The notes beneath the pieces were generated by a model that did no database searches, was not told the origin of the DNA, and was given only the letters and a program-made list of their open reading frames with translations. The translations under genes were made by a program, and so were the position numbers. Shown one piece after another: positions 16,752-51,475 of a stretch of DNA of 64,000 nucleotides. Source of the stretch: Rebecca billardiae RCC1528 (Eukaryota; Protista; Haptophyta); NCBI GenBank assembly GCA_965240325.2, contig OZ251228.1, positions 62,001 to 126,000 of the forward strand, written 5' to 3'. Position 1 is the stretch's first letter. Each line of letters begins with the position of its first letter.

Positions 16752-19315
16752 CTACGCCATCGGGAGCGCAGCGGACTGACGATTGCTCTTGGCACCGCCC
16801 AGCGTCGCGGCGGTGGCGATCGGGCCGATGGGCCGCGCGACGGGCCGCGCAGGCGGCTGCCGGTGCAAGATCGGGTGAACGGGGGCCACGGGGCCGCGCT
16901 GGAAGCGCGCGCGGCCGCCGCGGCCTCCGCCGCCCTTGCCCGCGCCGCCGCCGCCACGCCGCGCGCCGCCGAGCTCGGCCTCGTCGGACGCCGACTCGTC
17001 CGTGGCGGAGTCGTCGCTGTCCCGCGTCGAGCTCGGTCCGGAGCGGCCGGGGCGGGAGAGGCGCCGGGCGCGCGCCCTGGAGACGAGGGCTGCCGCGCCG
17101 CACAGGGCTGCCGCGCAGCACAGGGCGAGGCTGACGGCCGCGCCCAGCGCCATCGCGCGCGCGGCGCCGCGCGTGTGGTGCAAGGCCGGCGGCGGCGAGT
17201 CCGCTCCGGGCGGCCGCAGCGGCGGCGGTGGCGGCTGCGGCGGCCGTGGCGGCGGCGGCGGCGGCGGCGGCGGCGCGGGCGGCGTCGGCGGTGGCGGCGG
17301 CGCCGAGGGCGGGCAGTATGGCAGCAGCTCCCGCCGCCCCCTCGTGCCATACGCAAACGGCCCGCCGCAGATTGCAGTGCCGCCCGCCTCCCTGCCGCGG
17401 CGCGCGCGCACGCGGGGGGAGGGGGTGCGCAGCAGCGCGCGCAAGGCCGGGGCGCGGCGGCGGCGCGGCAGTGGGCACGCTGCCGGCTGAGGAGGCGTGC
17501 CGCGCGCCGCGCGCCGCGTGCGCCGAGCAGCTCTGCAGCAGCTCCGGGCTGGGCGCGTGCCGGGCGCAGCCGCAGCAGAGGCGCACGCGCGGCCGGTGCG
17601 CGCGCACAGCAGAGAGAGACCGCTCAGTGCGCCCAGCTCGGACGGCACCGTGCCGCTCAGCGCGTTCGAGTCGAGGAAGCTGGGCGCAGGCAGAGGCGCA
17701 CGCGCGCGCGCGCCGGCGTGCGCGCGGGGTCAGTGCCGCCTCACGCGCGGCCACACACGGCCGCCGCGCAGCACGCGCGGCGCCGCGCGCGCAATGGCGC
17801 GCGCGCGCACAGCTCGCCCAGCCGGCTCATGCCGCCCAGCTCGGTCGGCAGCGTGCCGCTCAGCCGGTTGTCCTGCAGCGAGCTGCATCGCAGCAGCGGC
17901 GCAGCAGCGGCGCAGCACGGGGCGCAGCACGGGGCCGGCGCGCGGGCACGCGCGGGCACGCGCTCACGCCACGCGCGCCACGCGGCACGCACAGCGTGCC
18001 GCGGCCTCGCGAGCCGCGCACACACAGCGCGCGCGCGCGCCCGCGCGCGCGCTCGCTCGGCCCGCGATGTGCGCGCGCGCCGCGCGTGCTGTGTGCGCCG
18101 CGCGCGCGCTGTGTGCGCCGCGCGCGCTGTGTGCGCCGCGCACACAGTCCGTGCAGCGCCGAGAGCGCGCCCAGCTGCGTGGGCAGCGCGCCGCTGAGAA
18201 GGTTCTCCCACAGCTCGCTGCGCGCGCACCGCGGAGGAGGGCGGCGCACGGGCGTGGTGGGGTCCGGCGCGGCGCGCGGGCCGAGCCTGCCCTCCCCTCC
18301 GCGCCAACCTGGCAGGCGCGGCGCCATCCAATCAGCGTGCGTGGCGCGGCTGTGGCGCGCCCGCGCGCGCGTGCGCCCCGGCGCGCACAGGCGCTCCAGC
18401 GCGGAGAGTGCGCCCAGCTCGGTGGGCAGCGCGCCGCTGAGCGCGTTGTAGAAGAGCTCGCTGCGCACGCCGGCGGCGCACGCGCGGCGCAGCGGCTCAG
18501 CGCGCGCCCGCAGCGCGCCACCGCGGCGCCGCGGCCGCGAGCGCGCGCGCGCGCGCTCGCGGCCGGCCCGTGCGCGCGCGCGCGCTCGGCCGCGCTCACA
18601 GGTAGCGCAGACGGCTGAGCCGCCCCAGCTCGGTGGGGATGCGCTGGCTCAGCGAGTTCACGTCCAGGTGCCTGCGCCGTGCGCACGCGCGCGGGGGGCG
18701 GGGGTCACGCGGGGACGAGGGCGGACGGGTGCCGTGGCGCCGCCATGCGGCCGAGGCGGCTGGCGCGCGCGGCCGGGCGACCAGCAGGCGGCTGCGCGGT
18801 GCGCAACGCACAGGTACGTCAGCGAGGCGAGCTCGCCGACCTCCGTCGGGATCGTGCCCGTCAGCTCGTTGTCGTGCAGCGAGCTGCGCCCAGGCCGCGC
18901 GCGCGATGCGCGAGCGAACGCGCAGCCGCACGTGTGCACCGCACGTGTGCACCGCAGGTGAGCTGCGCACGCACGCGGCCACACGCGCGCGCGCGGCCGC
19001 GCGGGCGTACAGGTAGGTGAGCCGTAATCTACCCAGCTCCGTCGGCACCGTGCCTGTGAGCTCGTCGTTCAGCCCCCTGCGCACCAGCAGCGGTCGGAGG
19101 TCCGCCGGGTGCACACGCGGCCTCGTCGGGTCAGGCGGCGCGGCGGCGCGGCGCGGGCGCGCCTCGTGCCGCGCGCACATCATCTGCTCGAGCCAGAGTG
19201 GGCAGCTCCAGCCGGGGCAGAGCTCGCCGAGCCTCGACGCGAGCGATGGCTGAGAGGCCGTCGGCTCGCCGAGCATGAGCAGCGCCGCCACCCGCAGCAC
19301 CGCGCCGCGCCGCAT
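16752..19315 (-). CDS. LRR receptor-like membrane protein (signal peptide, 7 LRRs, poly-Pro stalk, TM, short tail); 9 exons
   Basis: Exons 19179-19315, 19011-19076, 18812-18883, 18600-18671, 18389-18460, 18146-18217, 17811-17882, 17608-17679, 16752-17391, with GT-AG phase-2 introns. Plant-type LRR NxLSGxxPTELGxL; TM ALGAAVSLALCCAAALCGAAALV. Confidence 0.88.
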
Positions 19316-19399
19316 GATGGCGGCCGCCCGTCTTGGGCCGCCAGTTCGCTTTGCTTTGGTTCAAAAGTGTAATTGGTTGCCGCACTGGAGCGACTCCTA

Positions 19400-20211
19400 T
19401 AGTGGCCCTCAAGTTTAAGCGATAAAATCAAGCGGCTGCTCTATCGTCGGCGCTGAAGGTGAAGGCCGTGGTGCTGATGGCTGCGTACTTGGGGCTGATG
19501 CCCGCCCACAGTCACGTGTTCAGCCTTGCCGTGTCGTGCGCGAGGCGGCGGTAGCGTGCGCTGAAAGTAGGTGCAGCCGATCGGCGAGCTCGACGGTAGC
19601 CGCGCGGCGGCCTCCCGACCAAGCCGTGTGAGGCAGCCGCCGGCCTGCGCCTGCGAGTCCTCCGTGCGTGGAGCTAGGCTCCCACGCGTGGCCCGAGGCG
19701 TACACGGGGTGCCGTCCGAGCGCGCCAGTACACACCGAGCGCAGCAAGCTGGGCACCCTGCGCGGCAGGAGCATCCAATCGAGCGAGCGCTGCCCACGAG
19801 ATGAGCCCGTCGAGCCGCTGGCACGGCCCGGCGCGGCAGCTGCGCGAAAGTCTGTGGTGCGCCTGCACGTGGTCAAAGCACGAGCTCACACGCTGTGTGT
19901 GGACCAGGGACCCAGAGTGTACGTGCATGCGCACCACGCTCGAATTTATTGCGTGCGTGGAGCGGCGCTGTGCGTGCACGACCATGCTGGTGCATGTGAG
20001 ACCAGTCAGGTCTGTGCGCGATGGCCGGCCGCGCGAGCGCGCGCGTGCGCGACACAGCACACTTGCGGGCGAGCCGTGTGTCTGCGCAGACGCGGGTGCT
20101 CCCCGACCGTGCGCCACGAGCGAGAGAGCCGCCATGGTGCGCTCGTCACGGCGTGAGCGGGCGTGCAATCACGTAGCCAGCGAAGCGAACGCTTAAACCT
20201 GAGGGGTACTA
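19400..20211 (+). repeat. 812-bp MITE-like module, copy 1, with 22-bp imperfect TIRs
   Basis: Starts tagtggccctcaagtttaagcg and ends cgcttaaacctgaggggtacta. One substitution noticed vs copy 2 (20106 a / 26171 g). Confidence 0.93.
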
Positions 20212-20698
20212 AGTGGTAATAAAAGAGAGGTAAATGTTGCGCTGGTGCCAGGGGTGCGCTGAGGCGCGCGGGCTGCACCACGCGTACGACAATATTCGGG
20301 TCGGTATTCCACCACAGCGCGACCTCCGATCATTCGGCCCTGGTGGGCGAGGAGGAGACCATGCGCGTAGTGATTTGCGAGAGTTCGCTGATGCTTAAGC
20401 GTTGCGGCGCGCGGCGGTAGCAGTGCGCAGAGCATGGAGAGAAGGGCTGCAAACCACGCTAGTACGACCCATTAGCGCTGCCTCTTCGAGGCTGTATGCG
20501 TCGATTGCGCTCTAACGCCGGGTGCTGCGCGCGCTGTGTCGCCCAGGCGGCCGCCACCGTGCCGCACGCGGCCGTCGCCGGGGCTCTGGACGGATGATGG
20601 CTGCGATTCAAAAGTGCATACCGCGTAGATTCTTGTAACCGACCAATCAGCGAGCAGCTCACCAACCGGGAGGCCGTCCTCCCACCCCGGGAGCCACC

Positions 20699-22015
20699 AT
20701 GGGGAAGGCCGCACAGCGAGCAGCCGTGCAGCAGATCATGGCGAACTCGTGCTTAGGCGTGACATACAGGAAGGATCAGCGCATCTCGAAGAAGACGTTG
20801 GCTGAGACCTATGATCGCCACAACCTCTCTGCGAACGATCGGTACGGCCAAGCCATCGGGATGGTGCTCGGGCTCATGTTTGGGGCAGACTTCGCCGAGC
20901 CAGATGCCGTGAATGTCGCTGCCGGGCTGTGCGAGGTCCAGCCAGCGACGATTCGCAAGTACTTGAAGTGGCATAAGACGGGCTGGGGGCCGAGCACTCA
21001 TGGGATGCAACGGCGCGGGCCACGGCCGAAGATCCAGAAACGAGTGAAGGAAGAGCTCGTGACCAAGCTCAACACTGGGCCGCTTGGCATGTCGGTTCGT
21101 GCGGCAGCGATCGAGGTGGCGAACGAGAACCCAGGCCAGAATGGGCTCCTGAAACTCTCCGACTCGACTCTGATACGCGCGATCGCCAAGGATCTGCGCT
21201 GGCAGCCAGTCAAGCTGATGAAAGGGCTTACGGATGAGCACATGCGCCTCCGCGCCGAGTGGTGCGCGCACGTCCTCAACCGCGTGCCCAACTTCTCACA
21301 GCGCATCTTCTTCACCGACTCAAAGTACTTCCGCTTCGACTTCACGACCAAGAAGATCAGCAGTTGGTCTCCCATCGACGGCTCAGGGCGGTCATTCGAC
21401 GAGTGGGCCAAAGGATCAGGGCTGGTGGTGCATGCGTATGCTGGCATCTGCTTCTACGGAATGACCGAGCGACTCATCTTTGTTACGGGAACGAAAGGTC
21501 CCAGTACCCTTGACAGCATGCCTGCTCCGCACTACCGTGCAGGGAACGCAGAGCCATGCCGTGGTGTGTGCGGCGCCGAGTACGCCACTCGCGTGGTGCC
21601 GAAGCTGACGGCTGCGGCGAAGCTGCTCTTCCCTCCCGAGATGCACGACCAGATCATCTTCCAGCAGGATCGAGCCTCCCCGCACATGACGCCGGAGGCG
21701 ATCGAGGCTGTGACGCAAGCGTTTCGCTGCTCCACTGTGGAGAAGGGGTCGCGCCTCTACTGGCCGTCTCGCAGCCCGGATCTGTCGCTTATCGAGCACA
21801 TCTGGGCTCAGGTCGAGCACGAGCTGAACCGCATCAAGCTGGTGTGGTACCAGAATCAGAAGCGGCCTGACAAGCCTGATCACGCTTGGTTCCACGATGC
21901 GGTCCAGCGCGCGTACGGGGAGGTATGCAGCAAGGTGAAGGTCAAGTCAATGTTCCGCCACTACAACCAGCGCTTGAGGGAGTGCCGCGATCGGTCAGGC
22001 GCGCAGGTCCGCTGA
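20699..22015 (+). CDS. IS630/Tc1/mariner-superfamily transposase, DD41E (438 aa)
   Basis: IFFTDSKYF (D, 21317), IIFQQDRASPH (D, 21668), WPSRSPDLSLIEHIW (E, 21794). N-terminal HTH-like region with GPRPKI linker. Intact and intronless. Confidence 0.93.
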   Translation: MGKAAQRAAVQQIMANSCLGVTYRKDQRISKKTLAETYDRHNLSANDRYGQAIGMVLGLMFGADFAEPDAVNVAAGLCEVQPATIRKYLKWHKTGWGPSTHGMQRRGPRPKIQKRVKEELVTKLNTGPLGMSVRAAAIEVANENPGQNGLLKLSDSTLIRAIAKDLRWQPVKLMKGLTDEHMRLRAEWCAHVLNRVPNFSQRIFFTDSKYFRFDFTTKKISSWSPIDGSGRSFDEWAKGSGLVVHAYAGICFYGMTERLIFVTGTKGPSTLDSMPAPHYRAGNAEPCRGVCGAEYATRVVPKLTAAAKLLFPPEMHDQIIFQQDRASPHMTPEAIEAVTQAFRCSTVEKGSRLYWPSRSPDLSLIEHIWAQVEHELNRIKLVWYQNQKRPDKPDHAWFHDAVQRAYGEVCSKVKVKSMFRHYNQRLRECRDRSGAQVR

Positions 22016-22124
22016 GAATGCTATATAGCGTCGCACGCGATAGTCGTCAGCAAATCATATCGTCATCAGACGACAGAACTCAAAATTGAAATAGATGAGT
22101 GATGATGGCTACGCCTACGGACTC

Positions 22125-25100
22125 ATACGGCGGAGAGCTGCGGCTGCGGCTAGAGCCAGCGAGAAGCGCCGAGTCGGCGCGCGCGCCGTGCGCATCTGAA
22201 GGGCGGGCTCGGGCACGTGGTACACGCGCGGGGGGCGTGCCGAGCGCGCGCGGGCGCGCGCGCGCTCGGCGCTCCTCCTGCGCCGCCGCCACGGCCGGAG
22301 TTTCGGCTCAGCTCAGATCTCACGACCTCCCGACCTGCCGATCAGCCGGCGCCTCACGGCTCAGGTAACAACACGGCTGCTGCGGCGCGTGCGCACACGC
22401 GCGCGCGCCGGCGCGGCGCTCAGCGCCAGGTACGGCCCCGGCGAGCGTACACATGGCACCGGCGGCCCGCCTCTACCGTCGCGCGCGCGAGAGCTTGATC
22501 TCGAATCTGACCAAGCTGAGCTGGGTGTGTCACGACCAACGGCTACGGAGAGCTGCGGCTGCGGCTAGAGCCAGCGAGAAGCGCCGAGTCGGCGCGCGCG
22601 CCGTGCGCATCTGAAGGGCGGGCTCGGGCACGTGGTACACGCGCGGGGGGCGTGCCGAGCGCGTACGGGCGCGCGCGCGCTCGGCGCTCCTCTTGCGCCG
22701 CCGCCACGGCCGGAGTTTCGGCTCTGCTCAGATCTCACGACCTCCCGACCTGCCGATCAGCCGGCGCCTCACGGCTCAGGTAACAACACGGCTGCTGCGG
22801 CGCGTGCGCACACGCGCGCGCGCCGGCGCGGCGCTCAGCGCCAGGTACGGCCCCGGCGAGCGTACACATGGCACCGGCGGCCCGCCTCTACCGTCGCGCG
22901 CGCGAGAGCTTGATCTCGAATCTGACCAAGCTGAGCTGGGTGTGTCACGACCAACGGCTACGGAGAGCTGCGGCTGCGGCTAGAGCCAGCGAGAAGCGCC
23001 GAGTCGGCGCGCGCGCCGTGCGCATCTGAAGGGCGGGCTCGGGCACGTGGTACACGCGCGGGGGGCGTGCCGAGCGCGTACGGGCGCGCGCGCGCTCGGC
23101 GCTCCTCTTGCGCCGCCGCCACGGCCGGAGTTTCGGCTCTGCTCAGATCTCACGACCTCCCGACCTGCCGATCAGCCGGCGCCTCACGGCTCAGGTAACA
23201 ACACGGCTGCTGCGGCGCGTGCGCACACGCGCGCGCGCCGGCGCGGCGCTCAGCGCCAGGTACGGCCCCGGCGAGCGTAAACATGGCACCGGCGGCCCGC
23301 CTCTACCGTCGCGCGCGCGAGAGCTTGATCTCGAATCTGACCAAGCTGAGCTGGGTGTGTCACGACCAACGGCTACGGAGAGCTGCGGCTGCGGCTAGAG
23401 CCAGCGAGAAGCACCGAGTCGGCGCGCGCACCGTGCGCATCTGAAGGGCGGGCTCGGGCATGCGGTACACGCGTGAGGGGCGTGCCGAGCGCGTGCGGGC
23501 GCGCGCGCGCTCGACGCTCCTCCTGCGCCGCCGCCACGGCCGGAGTTTCGGCTCAGCTCAGATCTCACGACCTCCCGACCTGCCGATCAGCCGGCGCCTC
23601 ACGGCTTAGGCAACAACACGGCTGCTGCGGCGCGTGCGCACACGCGCGCGCGCCGGCGCGGCGCTCAGCGCCAGGTACGGCCCCGGCGAGCGTACACATG
23701 GCACCGGCGGCCCGCCTCTACCGTCGCGCGCGCGAGAGCTTGATCTCGAATCTGACCAAGCTGAGCTGGGTGTGTCACGACCAACGGCTACGGAGAGCTG
23801 CGGCTAGAGCCAGCGAGAAGCGCCGAGTCGGCGCGCGCGCCGTGCGCATCTGAAGGGCGGGCTCGGGCATGCGGTACACGCGCGGGGGGCGTGCCGAGCG
23901 CGTACGGGCGCGCGCGCGCTCGGCGCTCCTCTTGCGCCGCCGCCACGGCCGGAGTTTCGGCTCAGCTCAGATCTCACGACCTCCCGACCTGCCGATCAGC
24001 CGGCGCCTCACGGCTCAGGTAACAACACGGCTGCTGCGGCGCGTGCGCACACGCGCGCGCGCCGGCGCGGCGCTCAGCGCCAGGTACGGCCCCGGCGAGC
24101 GTACACATGGCACCGGCGGCCCGCCTCTACCGTCGCGCGCGCGAGAGCTTGATCTCGAATCTGACCAAGCTGAGCTGGGTGTGTCACGACCAACGGCTAC
24201 GGAGAGCTGCGGCTGCGGCTAGAGCCAGCGAGAAGCACCGAGTCGGCGCGCGCACCGTGCGCATCTGAAGGGCGGGCTCGGGCATGCGGTACACGCGTGA
24301 GGGGCGTGCCGAGCGCGTGTGGGCGCGCGCGCGCTCGACGCTCCTCCTGCGCCGCCGCCACGGCCGGAGTTTCGGCTCAGCTCAGATCTCACGACCTCCC
24401 GACCTGCCGATCAGCCGGCGCCTCACGGCTTAGGCAACAACACGGCTGCTGCGGCGCGTGCGCACACGCGCGCGCGCCGGCGCGGCGCTCAGCGCCAGGT
24501 ACGGCCCCGGCGAGCGTACACATGGCACCGGCGGCCCGCCTCTACTGTCGCGCGCGCAAGAGCTCGAGCTCGAATCTGACCAAGCTGAGCTGGGTGTGTC
24601 ACGACCAACGGCTACGGAGAGCTGCGGCTGCGGCTAGAGCCAGCGAGAAGCGCCGAGTCGGCGCGCGCGCCGTGCGCATCTGAAGGGCGGGCTCGGGCAC
24701 GTGGTACACGCGCGGGGGGCGTGCCGAGCGCGCGCGGGCGCGCGCGCGCTCGGCGCTCCTCCTGCGCCGCCGCCACGGCCGGAGTTTCGGCTCAGCTCAG
24801 ATCTCACGACCTCCCGACCTGCCGATCAGCCGGCGCCTCACGGCTCAGGTAACAACACGGCTGCTGCGGCGCGTGCGCACACGCGCGCGCGCCGGCGCGG
24901 CGCTCAGCGCCAGGTACGGCCCCGGCGAGCGTACACATGGCACCGGCGGCCCGCCTCTACCGTCGCGCGCGCGAGAGCTCGAGCTCGAATCTGACCAAGC
25001 TGAGCTGGGTGTGTCACGACCAACGGCTACGGAGAGCTGCGGCTGCGGCTAGAGCCAGCGAGAAGCGCCGAGTCGGCGCGCGCGCCGTGCGCATCTGAAG

Positions 25101-25155
25101 GGCGGGCTCGGGCATGCGGTACACGCGCGGGGGGCGTGCCGAGCGCGCGCGCGAG
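22125..25155 (+). repeat. Tandem array of 415-bp unit, 7 full copies plus a partial copy
   Basis: ggagagctgcggct at 22132, 22547, 22962, 23377, 23792, 24201, 24616, 25031 (one unit is 409 bp). Confidence 0.96.
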
Positions 25156-25464
25156 CGCTCGAGGTCACAACTCCTGTGGCTGATTTGATCTTGCGTTCTC
25201 AGTGGCCTAGGCCATGGTCACCACATGTCACGTCCCTGACTGACGCTTACGAATGACAACCCAGTCATGTTGCCAATGGAGCAGCACAGTCTCGTGCAAC
25301 GGGGAGAAGCCGGCTACTCCGAGCGCTCCGGCACGATCAGTCCTAGCCATATAGCGCGCGCGCCAGCCAGAGTCGAAACGGACTGCGCGCGTCAGAGTGA
25401 ACCTTCGTCGACACCTCCTACGATGATGCTCACGTCTCACGCGGGTTTTCAGCAGCCTCCGACT

Positions 25465-26276
25465 TAGTGGCCCTCAAGTTTAAGCGATAAAATCAAGCGG
25501 CTGCTCTATCGTCGGCGCTGAAGGTGAAGGCCGTGGTGCTGATGGCTGCGTACTTGGGGCTGATGCCCGCCCACAGTCACGTGTTCAGCCTTGCCGTGTC
25601 GTGCGCGAGGCGGCGGTAGCGTGCGCTGAAAGTAGGTGCAGCCGATCGGCGAGCTCGACGGTAGCCGCGCGGCGGCCTCCCGACCAAGCCGTGTGAGGCA
25701 GCCGCCGGCCTGCGCCTGCGAGTCCTCCGTGCGTGGAGCTAGGCTCCCACGCGTGGCCCGAGGCGTACACGGGGTGCCGTCCGAGCGCGCCAGTACACAC
25801 CGAGCGCAGCAAGCTGGGCACCCTGCGCGGCAGGAGCATCCAATCGAGCGAGCGCTGCCCACGAGATGAGCCCGTCGAGCCGCTGGCACGGCCCGGCGCG
25901 GCAGCTGCGCGAAAGTCTGTGGTGCGCCTGCACGTGGTCAAAGCACGAGCTCACACGCTGTGTGTGGACCAGGGACCCAGAGTGTACGTGCATGCGCACC
26001 ACGCTCGAATTTATTGCGTGCGTGGAGCGGCGCTGTGCGTGCACGACCATGCTGGTGCATGTGAGACCAGTCAGGTCTGTGCGCGATGGCCGGCCGCGCG
26101 AGCGCGCGCGTGCGCGACACAGCACACTTGCGGGCGAGCCGTGTGTCTGCGCAGACGCGGGTGCTCCCCGGCCGTGCGCCACGAGCGAGAGAGCCGCCAT
26201 GGTGCGCTCGTCACGGCGTGAGCGGGCGTGCAATCACGTAGCCAGCGAAGCGAACGCTTAAACCTGAGGGGTACTA
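25465..26276 (+). repeat. 812-bp MITE-like module, copy 2
   Basis: Direct copy of 19400-20211 (offset 6065). Confidence 0.93.
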
Positions 26277-26438
26277 TACCGGCAAAGCCCACCGGCCGTC
26301 CCGGCCCGGCGGGTGGCGCCCCCCCCCTCGTTTGACCGCTGACCGTACAGTAAGTACTCTGTATCTCACCAGACTCCAGTCACACAGTGCCTACTGTACT
26401 GTCATAGTAGTAGTAGTAGTGCGGCATCAGGCGATTGC

Positions 26439-49161: not shown

Positions 49162-51475
49162 TGGCCCGCGGTGCAGGGCGGAGCGCGCAGCGTGGAGCCC
49201 GCACCAGCGGGCCGGAACCACGTTTCAAAAAGATCTTTGATCAAGAAAAAGGGACGCGGGGGCCGATTTTTAGGGCTGGCGGAGACCGAGTTTCGAATTT
49301 TGAGACCCTCTCTACAGATGCATCACGGAGAAAAAAACCGCGTCCACGACATTCCCCTAATCAATCGTGGACGGCCGGGCGTGAGAGTTCACTTCTGTGT
49401 GAAGTAGGACGGTTACAAGTCCAATACAAGCGTCAGCTTCTTTGAGGCTATTTTTGCACGTCCTTACGGGATCAGCGAAGTAACCAACCGATATATATTG
49501 GCTTCGTCGGGGTCGTATTCACTACTGCCCGAGTACTGGAGAACATTTGCACCGCGCTTCGTATTCATATGTATGGTTCACGCAGGCATAAAATCGCTTC
49601 GTCGGGGTCGTATCCACTATACTGGAGAACATCATTTGCACCGCTTCGTTTTCATCGAGCAGAATATCATATCGATATTCATCAGGCGCACGTGTGCGTA
49701 TTCATCATCAGCCTTCGGGAATTGGGAGTAGCTATTGGCCTTTGCCCTCTGGCGAGCCAGTTGTGCGCACTTTAAGAGCAGGCCTGAGCAGGCTCGAGGC
49801 CACTTTTTTGCCGCTCACGTGGACATGATGCCGAGCACGTCTCACGAGGTGCGCGCGGCGAGTGGCGTCTGGAGCGCGCGGCTGTGGTGGGCCCCGACGG
49901 CCGTCGACATCGCGTTCGTGCCCCGCTCACTCTGAACTCCGCGCGCCCCCGCCGCCCTATCGATCGATCATCGATGCCTGCGCGCGGAATCGTGCACCGC
50001 GCGTGCCGCCCGCGACCGGCCGCGGCAGGCCCGAGCCGCCCTTTCGGGCTCTCGCAAGCACGGGGGCAGCGGCGCCTGATGGCGGACTGATCGACATCTG
50101 AGTCTCCGACTTCACCACGCGCCCCCCTCGTCATGCCTTCCCGGGGTCTCCCACGGAAGACGGACTAACCGAGCAGGCGACGGTACTGTCTGTACGCTGC
50201 CGTGACACACGGCGCCTGGGCAGCGGGCAGTGGTGGCGGGGTCCCGCGGACGTCAGTCTTCCCCTCGCGCCCTGCTCACCTCGAGTGCGCCGCCACGCGC
50301 CTCCGCACGCGTGTCCCATCGATGCGCAGAGCGGCATGCTTGCATGAAAGTTGAAATGGCTGGGTCATCAGCCCGCGCCGGCAAGTCTGTCTAGCGCTGG
50401 ACGGACGGACATAGGAGGACGAGCAGCGCGGGCGACGGTGGTGCGCGACGCTCCCAGAGCTGGCCGTGCCTCTGCGACGCGTGCCGAGCCTGACCGAGGT
50501 GTGTCACCCGGTCCACGCGCGGCGCGCGCGAAGGCACCGGTGCTGTGGCTGCTCGGCTCGAATCCGCGGCCTCGCCTGGCACCGCGGCACCGTGCTCCCT
50601 GGCTGTCAGCTCCGCGTGGCCTGGCGTGCACGTAGAGTTGCGCTCATGCGTCGATCACGCCTCGCGCCCGCCTGTCGGCCGTCGCGCAGGCGCTGGTCGA
50701 ACCCTACTCGGACCAGTGCAAATCATCTATCCCGTGGCCGCTGCCGGCGCGCGGTGACGGGACAGCGCGGTCAGCAGCAGGCGCAGCGGCCCGAACGAAT
50801 CCGCGGCCCCGCACCGTGCTCCCTGGCTGTCTGCTCCGCGTGGCCTGGCGTGCACGTGGAGTCGCGCTCATGCGTCGATCACGCCTCGTCGCATCCGCCT
50901 GTACACAATATCGGCGCCGCGGCGGCGGCTCGCGGTCAGCAGCAGGCGCAGCGGCCCGAACGAATCCGCGGCCCCGCACCGTGCTCCCTGGCTGTCTGCT
51001 CCGCGTGGCCTGGCGTGCACGTGGAGTCGCGCTCATGCGTCGATCACGCCTCGTCGCATCCGCCTGTACACAATATCGGCGCCGCGGCGGCGGCTGTGAC
51101 TGGGCCCGCCCGGCCCCGGGCGCCCCGGCGGCCCGGCGCGGCCGAGGCGGCGGCGCGCCGCTGGAGTCTACTGCTACAGTTTACTAAGAATAAGAGACGC
51201 ACACAGCTCAGGCAGGCGAGATTGACGCCCGCCAGCTGTCACCGCCCATGAAGCCGTCGCCGATGGTAGCGCCGCCGGAAAAAAATCGTTACATCAGTAG
51301 TTGTACGGGCATGCCAACCGTGCCATTACTGGTCTCACTCTCAGCCTCAGGTCTGTCCGAATCGGACAATCGTGAAATTGAATAGAGTTAGACGACTGCG
51401 CGACGGAGGGTGCACCGCCACCGCGGGCCCCGAACTACGTTCGTTCTACGGAAAAGGACCGCGGAACGCGGTCAT
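49162..51475 (+). mobile_element. Non-autonomous Helitron2/Helentron-like element, copy B
   Basis: 5' ggcccgcggtg (49163-73) is inverted vs caccgcgggcc (51419-29); terminal hairpin 51457-51473; ends shared with copy A. Confidence 0.6.
50560..51093 (+). repeat. ~165-bp tandem duplication plus a diverged third copy
   Basis: gcaccgtgctccctggctgtc at ~50587, 50811, 50976. Confidence 0.85.

Follow-up and report, generated by a model that had tools for sequence, protein, structure and literature searches.

Putative Tc1/IS630-like transposons bounded by long terminal direct repeats in the haptophyte Rebecca billardiae

Structure of the element and its copies

The stretch of DNA analysed here (the window) comprises 64,000 nucleotides of the haptophyte Rebecca billardiae RCC1528 (assembly GCA_965240325.2, contig OZ251228.1, positions 62,001 to 126,000 of the forward strand; C11:62001-126000 in our contig numbering) and contains a 6,877-bp element in which two direct 812-bp modules (M) enclose an internal region (I) with a putative transposase gene and a tandem satellite. 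Coordinates given without a contig are window positions. The assembly is 72 Mb in 41 contigs and very GC-rich, the window having 72% GC. The element and its copies in this genome are referred to as family 1. The features of the window element are:

19398..19399: left TA target-site duplication (flank read; for the window copy, suggested by the empty site on C17 described below)
19400..20211, plus strand: M1, the left terminal module (812 bp), resembling a long terminal direct repeat (LTDR), with imperfect 22-bp terminal inverted repeats (TIRs), TAGTGG..GTACTA
20212..20698, plus strand: start of I, 5' of the transposase open reading frame (ORF), beginning AGTGGTAATAAAAG; the inner joint is the same at all family-1 loci
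20699..22015, plus strand: putative Tc1/IS630-like transposase ORF, 438 aa, with D207, D324 and E366 (DD41E) and no internal stops
22131..25158, plus strand: internal satellite in tandem array, period 415 bp, 7.3 copies, 97% matches
25159..25464, plus strand: unique 3' tail of I, ending ..CAGCCTCCGACT
25465..26276, plus strand: M2, the right terminal module (812 bp), a direct repeat with one difference from M1
26277..26278: right TA target-site duplication (flank GTACTA/TAccggcaaag)

The two modules are identical at 811 of 812 positions, the lone mismatch lying at module position 707 (20106 A vs 26171 G). Both start TAGTGGCCCTCAAGTTTAAGCG and end CGCTTAAACCTGAGGGGTACTA, and their 22-bp ends match in inverted orientation at 19 of 22 positions. 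An extra TA is present only at the outer flanks (..gcgactccTA/TAGTGG on the left, GTACTA/TAccggcaaag on the right), the inner flanks having no TA duplication (GTACTA/agtgg and ccgact/TAGTGG). An earlier annotation made from the nucleotides alone (the sequence-only reading) had described the near-identical direct modules with their own imperfect TIRs, the intact Tc1-type transposase and 415-bp array between them, and an extra TA restricted to the outer flanks, with AG and CT at the inner ones; all of these features were recovered in our analysis. Its two direct modules give the element four ends, instead of the single TIR pair that is the rule in the Tc1/mariner/IS630 superfamily. Directly upstream, ~85 bp from the insertion, lies an ORF on the minus strand (18596-19315) with plant-type leucine-rich-repeat motifs (..PTELGRL..L..L).

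At least 42 copies of the module were found at ~17 loci of the 72-Mb assembly and none in a reversed-pattern control, indicating that this recurrence is not due to chance. Most copies form direct arrays with regular periods: arrays of two modules (periods of 3514, 3516, 3803, 3923 (twice) and 3930 bp, and 6065 bp in the window); arrays of three (3923 bp), four (2683 bp) and seven (3923 bp); and a complex array on contig C15. The differences between periods are attributable to variation in satellite copy number and to internal deletion. Eleven family-1 arrays were listed, both ends being examined in nine, the window pair included, and 30 modules were read; C5:1503883, C7:3261859, C7:4032835, C11:1122824-1148724, C14:308026, C37:508624 and the inner C15 array are known by coordinates only. 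Every array read is bounded by ..TA/TAGTGG and GTACTA/TA.. in unrelated DNA, and its inner joints are those of the window element (GTACTA/agtggtaataaaag and cagcctccgact/TAGTGG). Solo modules, which the sequence-only reading had anticipated, also exist: three were read, one flanked by TA on both sides and two on one side only. The forms seen are (M-I)n-M, M-(I)n-M and solo M. Three family-1 modules (C11:1122824, 1135774 and 1148724) are spaced at exact intervals of 12,950 bp, which would fit a solo module or unit lying inside a larger tandem duplication. The left flank of the solo at C5:27188 is 96.6% identical to window positions 51174-51290; the homology ends at the insertion point, where the flank is TG, not TA.

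The target site could be read at C17, where the module pair is inserted in one of the two arms of a perfect inverted duplication (L003:2313-2649; at least 136 bp, arms ~200 bp apart). The other arm, the reverse complement of L003:2514-2649, consists of the left flank, a single TA and the right flank (136 bp, 100% identical), whereas in the filled arm TAGTGG...GTACTA is flanked by TA on both sides. The whole M-I-M unit therefore occupies one duplicated TA, and the boundaries of the element are those given by the 812-bp modules. This comparison and the TA flanks of all arrays examined conform to the TA target-site duplication of Tc1/mariner/IS630 elements. The earlier claim that the unit moved as one piece gains support from the C17 site, from the same inner joints at 10 or more loci and from their unrelated flanks; the window copy itself is considered below. 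A shorter reading of the module, as a core of 808 bp accompanied by a TATA duplication or by TATATA as the target, was discarded, given the single TA of the empty-site paralogue and the TA/CAGGG boundary of family 3 (next section). The C14 pair (2162424; L007 left flank) lies in a paralogue of the C17 flank (L003:2330-2350; ..caatggcaTAcccccgcc..), with an extra cgtatatata between the expected TA and the element, which may be a scar left by earlier rounds of insertion and excision if this TA is a hot spot, or may simply reflect a TA-rich target.

The transposase and its related families

Within the assembly only the window copy encodes the 438-aa protein, the sole intact family-1 transposase; the other family-1 units are internal-deletion derivatives which lack window I positions 724 to ~1919-2068 and retain only the first ~78 codons of the transposase. 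Two further families encode related transposases: family 2 (433 aa, 38% identical, ~24 intact copies in the assembly) and family 3 (417 aa, 28% identical). D207, D324 and E366 do not vary among the three families, the first D being assigned by motif only, and form the DDE/D triad of the Tc1/mariner/IS630 superfamily with spacings of DD41E, DD47E and DD42E. A three-family profile matches the catalytic domain of the Sleeping Beauty (SB) transposase SB100X at 2e-7, with FQQD aligned to SB FQHD (D244) and SPDLSLIE to SPDLNPIE (E279), and the language-model look-alikes of the transposase are Tc1-like DDE_3 clusters of eukaryotes. Membership of this superfamily is assigned from the profile alignment and the TA duplication, and the window protein represents a divergent Tc1/IS630-like branch.

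Families 2 and 3 share the module build of family 1. In family 2 the direct modules measure 794 bp (TAGTCCC..GGTCCCTA) and are 100% identical in each of four elements; TA is confined to the outer flanks, and a 417-bp satellite comes after the transposase. The modules of family 3 are 782 bp long (CAGGGTC..GACCCTG, with a TA on either side) and are accompanied by a transposase and a satellite of ~200 bp. No ordinary nucleotide similarity was found between the three families. Sensitive alignment detected weak homology between the family-1 and family-2 modules and between their 415- and 417-bp satellites (scores of 60 and 73, vs shuffle means of 27 and 36, standard deviation ~5), and the families have the end motif CCCTCA(C)AAGTTTAAGC in common. 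Since modules and satellites are homologous, the build is older than the split of family 1 from family 2. Conservation of ORFs across the three families is limited to the transposase; no second conserved gene and no conserved ORF in M were found. The sequence-only reading had named transposase copies without flanking modules as evidence to the contrary, and families 2 and 3 show the opposite. Its picture of a bacterial-style composite gives way to a different one: judged from the three families in this genome and their metagenomic relatives, the LTDR-internal region-LTDR build (LTDR-INT-LTDR) is the inherited standard architecture of a transposase lineage, not an opportunistic composite.

A profile search covering 1.8 billion representatives returned 644 homologues below 1e-10, and a word-based protein search only the organism's own proteins. 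The European Nucleotide Archive (ENA) contig L054 (57% GC) reads TA/M-I-TA-I-M-I, with a 796-bp module (TAGGGG..CCCCTA, ~26-bp TIR). Contigs L047, L053 and L055 close as units of 3217, 2996 and 2996 bp; this closure does not prove a circle, because short-read assemblers close M-I-M or tandem units likewise. L047 and L055 carry a TAGGGG..CCCCTA module (797 and 796 bp) upstream of the transposase, bringing the module lengths in five lineages to 812, 794, 782, 797 and 796 bp. The contigs of relatives P0004, P0007, P0008 and P0016 were too short or had no clear module. In P0008, a more distant relative (430 aa; Logan contigs L049-L052), the transposase is preceded by a conserved 337-aa ORF in four independent samples, with no ~800-bp module recognised.

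Other observations concern the distribution and the periodicity of these families. A stretch of ~110 kb on contig C1 (C1:2318313-2431806) contains at least 10 modules of family 2, a dimer among them, together with 9 transposase copies, both orientations being represented; the cluster could reflect local hopping or a domain rich in transposable elements. An extra inverted family-3 module (L044:960-1744; 99% identical) lies 845 bp from a family-3 element, forming a three-module cluster of mixed orientation. The 417-bp satellite unit is a diverged dimer of ~208 bp (half-vs-half score of 49, shuffle maximum of 31) and the family-3 satellite has a period of ~200 bp (L044:3466-4318); the modules measure ~4 x 200 bp, and these lengths are near multiples of the nucleosome repeat.

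Joints, transposition and alternative explanations

Tandem units also reveal how the ends are joined. Family-2 arrays, with modules M' and internal regions I', have the form M'-(I'-TA)n-I'-M' (n+1 = 4 at C7, period 3999; n+1 = 3 at C30, period 4832), and every I'-I' joint examined reads ..CTGCTCACT TA AGTGAGCAG..; one M'-M' dimer (C1:2318313-2319898) was found, whose copies overlap by two bases and share one TA. In family 1, the C15 array contains four I-TA-I joints, two of which recur 5803 bp apart, matching the spacing of the neighbouring modules; this higher-order repeat indicates unequal crossover in place. No M-M joint was found in family 1. The I-TA-I and M-TA-M joints indicate that the inner ends are in use, in agreement with the four usable ends proposed by the sequence-only reading.

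Among the 30 modules read there are 18 variable sites, 17 of which are fixed within arrays and differ between them. Five substitutions are private to the C11:1815387 array and occur in each of its four modules, and the private changes of the window pair occur in both of its modules; modules are identical within nine of ten arrays, only the window pair being internally different. A comparison of left and right modules as separate lineages gave no left/right signal, all the variation lying between arrays. Cut-and-paste of a fixed four-ended composite would keep the left and right lineages separate, and therefore something homogenises the modules. Two candidates are unequal crossover, which is demonstrably active, and the copying of both modules from one template. 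The second, which we regard as unlikely, would involve either a one-module circle integrated as a cointegrate or a concatemer. The plain composite of the earlier reading, although right about the inner ends, predicts such concerted evolution only if unequal crossover is frequent or an intermediate with a single module is involved.

We consider it probable that these elements form a lineage of Tc1/IS630-like transposons with a standard LTDR-INT-LTDR build, in which the whole unit is inserted into TA through the outer ends of its modules. The transposase would bind the ends of M (20-26-bp inverted ends starting YAG) and pair the two outermost of them, on the left of the first M and on the right of the last, placing the whole unit into a TA that is duplicated; the same ends would let a single M leave. 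Tc1/Tc3-type enzymes are known to cleave the non-transferred strand at a point 2 nt within the element. A 2-nt staggered cut inside termini that start with TA would leave self-complementary TA overhangs on the donor and on the element ends, and religation of these overhangs would give I-TA-I after the loss of M and M-TA-M after the loss of I. Unequal crossover between direct modules would generate multimers and solos, and keep the modules of an array identical. At least 40 non-autonomous family-1 modules, whose M ends match those of the window copy, could be served in trans by its transposase. End pairing, the 2-nt stagger and the supply in trans are the parts of this scheme which we infer from the arrangement of the sequences.

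Several results weigh against this scheme. The window copy differs from the non-autonomous copies by ~1% in M, ~4% in the first 390 bp of I and ~5% in the satellite and 3' tail, but by 25-35% from ~20600 through the ORF remnant (peptide 64-66% identical), so cross-mobilisation has to be assumed; as divergence along the unit is uneven, either the window element would be a mosaic or the non-autonomous units would stem from a different master that has been lost. The contigs of a single sequencing run (5% of words) contain the non-autonomous M/I variant and not the window transposase, a gap in contigs that proves nothing. The window protein stays below the curated Pfam thresholds (DDE_3, HTH_Tnp_Tc3_2), scoring 20.9 bits on DDE_3, under the cut-off of 28.6, with no helix-turn-helix (HTH) domain detected; its relatives are also below the DDE_3 cut-off, with Tc3-type HTH hits among them and, in P0010, HTH_28 above its cut-off. 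Tc1/mariner enzymes usually favour close ends, and solo M would consequently be expected to outnumber units; the count of composites against solos that had been suggested earlier gave the reverse in family 1, with ~5 solos and ~12 arrays. Neither an empty site nor a polymorphism of the window copy itself was found (same assembly; contigs of one sequencing run), so that its own mobility is presumed. Finally, the array-private changes require very efficient homogenisation, which a single-module intermediate explains more simply.

Such an intermediate is the basis of an alternative that we regard as unlikely but worth weighing: a circle or cointegrate route like that of IS26 translocatable units, in which recombination between two M would form a circle of one M and one I that enters the chromosome in one of two ways, its M transposing replicatively (nick-only) or the circle recombining with a solo M already in place, giving M-I-M with TA at the outer flanks only, and arrays from multimeric circles. 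The private substitutions shared by the modules of an array, with identity in nine of ten arrays, are what a single template would leave, although the unequal crossover visible in the C15 higher-order repeat likewise homogenises modules. Family 1 is dominated by units and not by solos, and the short-read contigs L047, L053 and L055 close as circles of one M and one I, but collapsed tandem or direct repeats also assemble as circles, and a circle of this kind has no joint that is absent from a linear array and is thus undetectable here. The same proposal was made by the authors of KolobokP, an animal transposon of the same build (PMC9587614). No chimeras combining left and right modules of different haplotypes were seen, which argues against recombination into unrelated solos, and Tc1/mariner enzymes are known to cut and paste through double-strand cleavage. 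That the lineage moves not by plain cut-and-paste but by one-module circles (M+I) entering TA sites as cointegrates, with both repeats regenerated from one template, seems to us somewhat more doubtful still. If true, it would be a DNA-only analogue of the regeneration of long terminal repeats (LTRs) and a eukaryotic counterpart of IS26 translocatable units, and the constrained ~800-bp module length and the conserved internal satellite would be functional parts of the circle cycle.

It is improbable that I is a Tc1-like element of its own (ends AGTG..CACT between TAs), mobile independently of M, with M-I-M merely one assembly of two separately mobile parts. I' of family 2 does have a perfect 9-bp TIR (AGTGAGCAG..CTGCTCACT) between TAs, I of family 1 starts AGTGG and ends CGACT, that of L054 starts TGTG and ends CACA, and the M'-M' dimer with one TA resembles a precise loss of I'. 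However, no end of I abuts unrelated DNA, every array end examined being an M end; family 3 lacks both TA at its inner joints and a TIR in its I; and cleavage at the M ends alone equally explains I-TA-I and M-TA-M. A nested version, in which a TA separating tandem M copies served as the insertion site of I, was kept as a minor rival only, family 1 having no M-M joint and the family-3 inner joints not being TA. The sequence-only reading had offered as its alternative two independent insertions of one miniature inverted-repeat transposable element (MITE); that such insertions bracketed a transposase gene and a satellite by chance, or that the structure is an assembly artefact, is hardly credible. 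Each module is a complete TIR-bounded unit and solos exist, but the inner flanks have no TA duplication, the inner joints are the same at every family-1 array examined, the same build occurs in families 2 and 3 and in contigs of independent assemblies from JGI and ENA, and one TA holds the whole C17 unit. The shared inner joints and the C17 empty site refute two independent MITE insertions.

Comparison with known systems

The closest known counterpart of these elements is KolobokP of animals, which has an LTDR-INT-LTDR structure with TIR-bearing LTDRs and occurs as solos, (LTDR-INT)n-LTDR and LTDR-(INT)n-LTDR, LTDR excision having been inferred (Kojima & Bao 2022, Mob DNA 13:24, PMC9587614). 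Its authors considered this build unlike any other DNA transposon, related the multimers to a His-Me homing endonuclease that the element encodes, and discussed an IS26-like circle (PMC9587614). The architecture is therefore already known in eukaryotes, whereas the sequence-only reading had described IS-flanked composites as bacterial. The elements described here share with KolobokP the LTDR-INT-LTDR build, TIR-bearing LTDRs, solos, both kinds of multimer, a target-site duplication at the outer flanks only and an inferred LTDR excision; their INT-INT joints keep one target-like motif (TATA in KolobokP-1_MeMe, TA here) and their LTDR length is constrained (~450 or 660 bp there, 782-812 bp here). 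They have the build of KolobokP and not its transposase or gene content: the transposase is of Kolobok type there and Tc1/IS630-like here; the target-site duplication is 3-5 bp there and TA here; the homing endonuclease contrasts with the lack of a second conserved ORF here; all three families here contain an internal satellite, those of families 1 and 2 being homologous; and KolobokP lives in animals, the present elements in a GC-rich microbial eukaryote.

No report of an LTDR build in Tc1/mariner-type elements was found in the full-text literature searched, which is not proof of absence. The lineage described here is a second, independent occurrence of the KolobokP-type architecture, in an unrelated superfamily. 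Its presence in a Tc1/IS630-like superfamily makes the build a recurrent solution and not a curiosity. As multimers occur here without an endonuclease gene, we argue that the endonuclease is not needed for their formation. A 438-aa protein, 22-bp ends and a TA target would also provide a small and simple test system for how both ends are kept identical.

Likeness to Tc1, Tc3, Sleeping Beauty and Mos1 lies in the DDE core (QQD and SPDLxxIE aligned to SB100X), the TA duplication and the MITE-like non-autonomous partners, and the YAG-type ends resemble the CAGTG of Tc1. Canonical Tc1/mariner/IS630 elements differ in having one TIR pair and no long terminal direct repeats; the D-to-E spacing is 34 in Tc1 and SB and 41-47 here, and the spacing of the first to the second D is longer here (105-116) than in canonical members.

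As in bacterial compound transposons and IS26 pseudo-compound transposons, direct TIR-bounded modules bracket other DNA, the target-site duplication is found at the outer flanks only and module plus cargo is amplified in tandem. The one-module circle of IS26 translocatable units, as a possible intermediate, is a further likeness (PMC9587614). In the bacterial systems the flanking insertion sequence encodes the transposase and the middle is cargo, whereas here the modules are non-coding, the transposase is in the middle and the host is a eukaryote.

The long direct repeats with short inverted tips, the solos, the multimers of LTR-I-LTR-I-LTR type and the identity of the two repeats of an element, with element-private changes, all recall LTR retrotransposons, and such elements will be mis-called in annotation as LTR elements or as a MITE plus an orphan gene. 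In contrast to LTR retrotransposons, no reverse transcriptase, gag or integrase is present here, the target-site duplication is TA, and the termini are TAG..CTA, not TG..CA.

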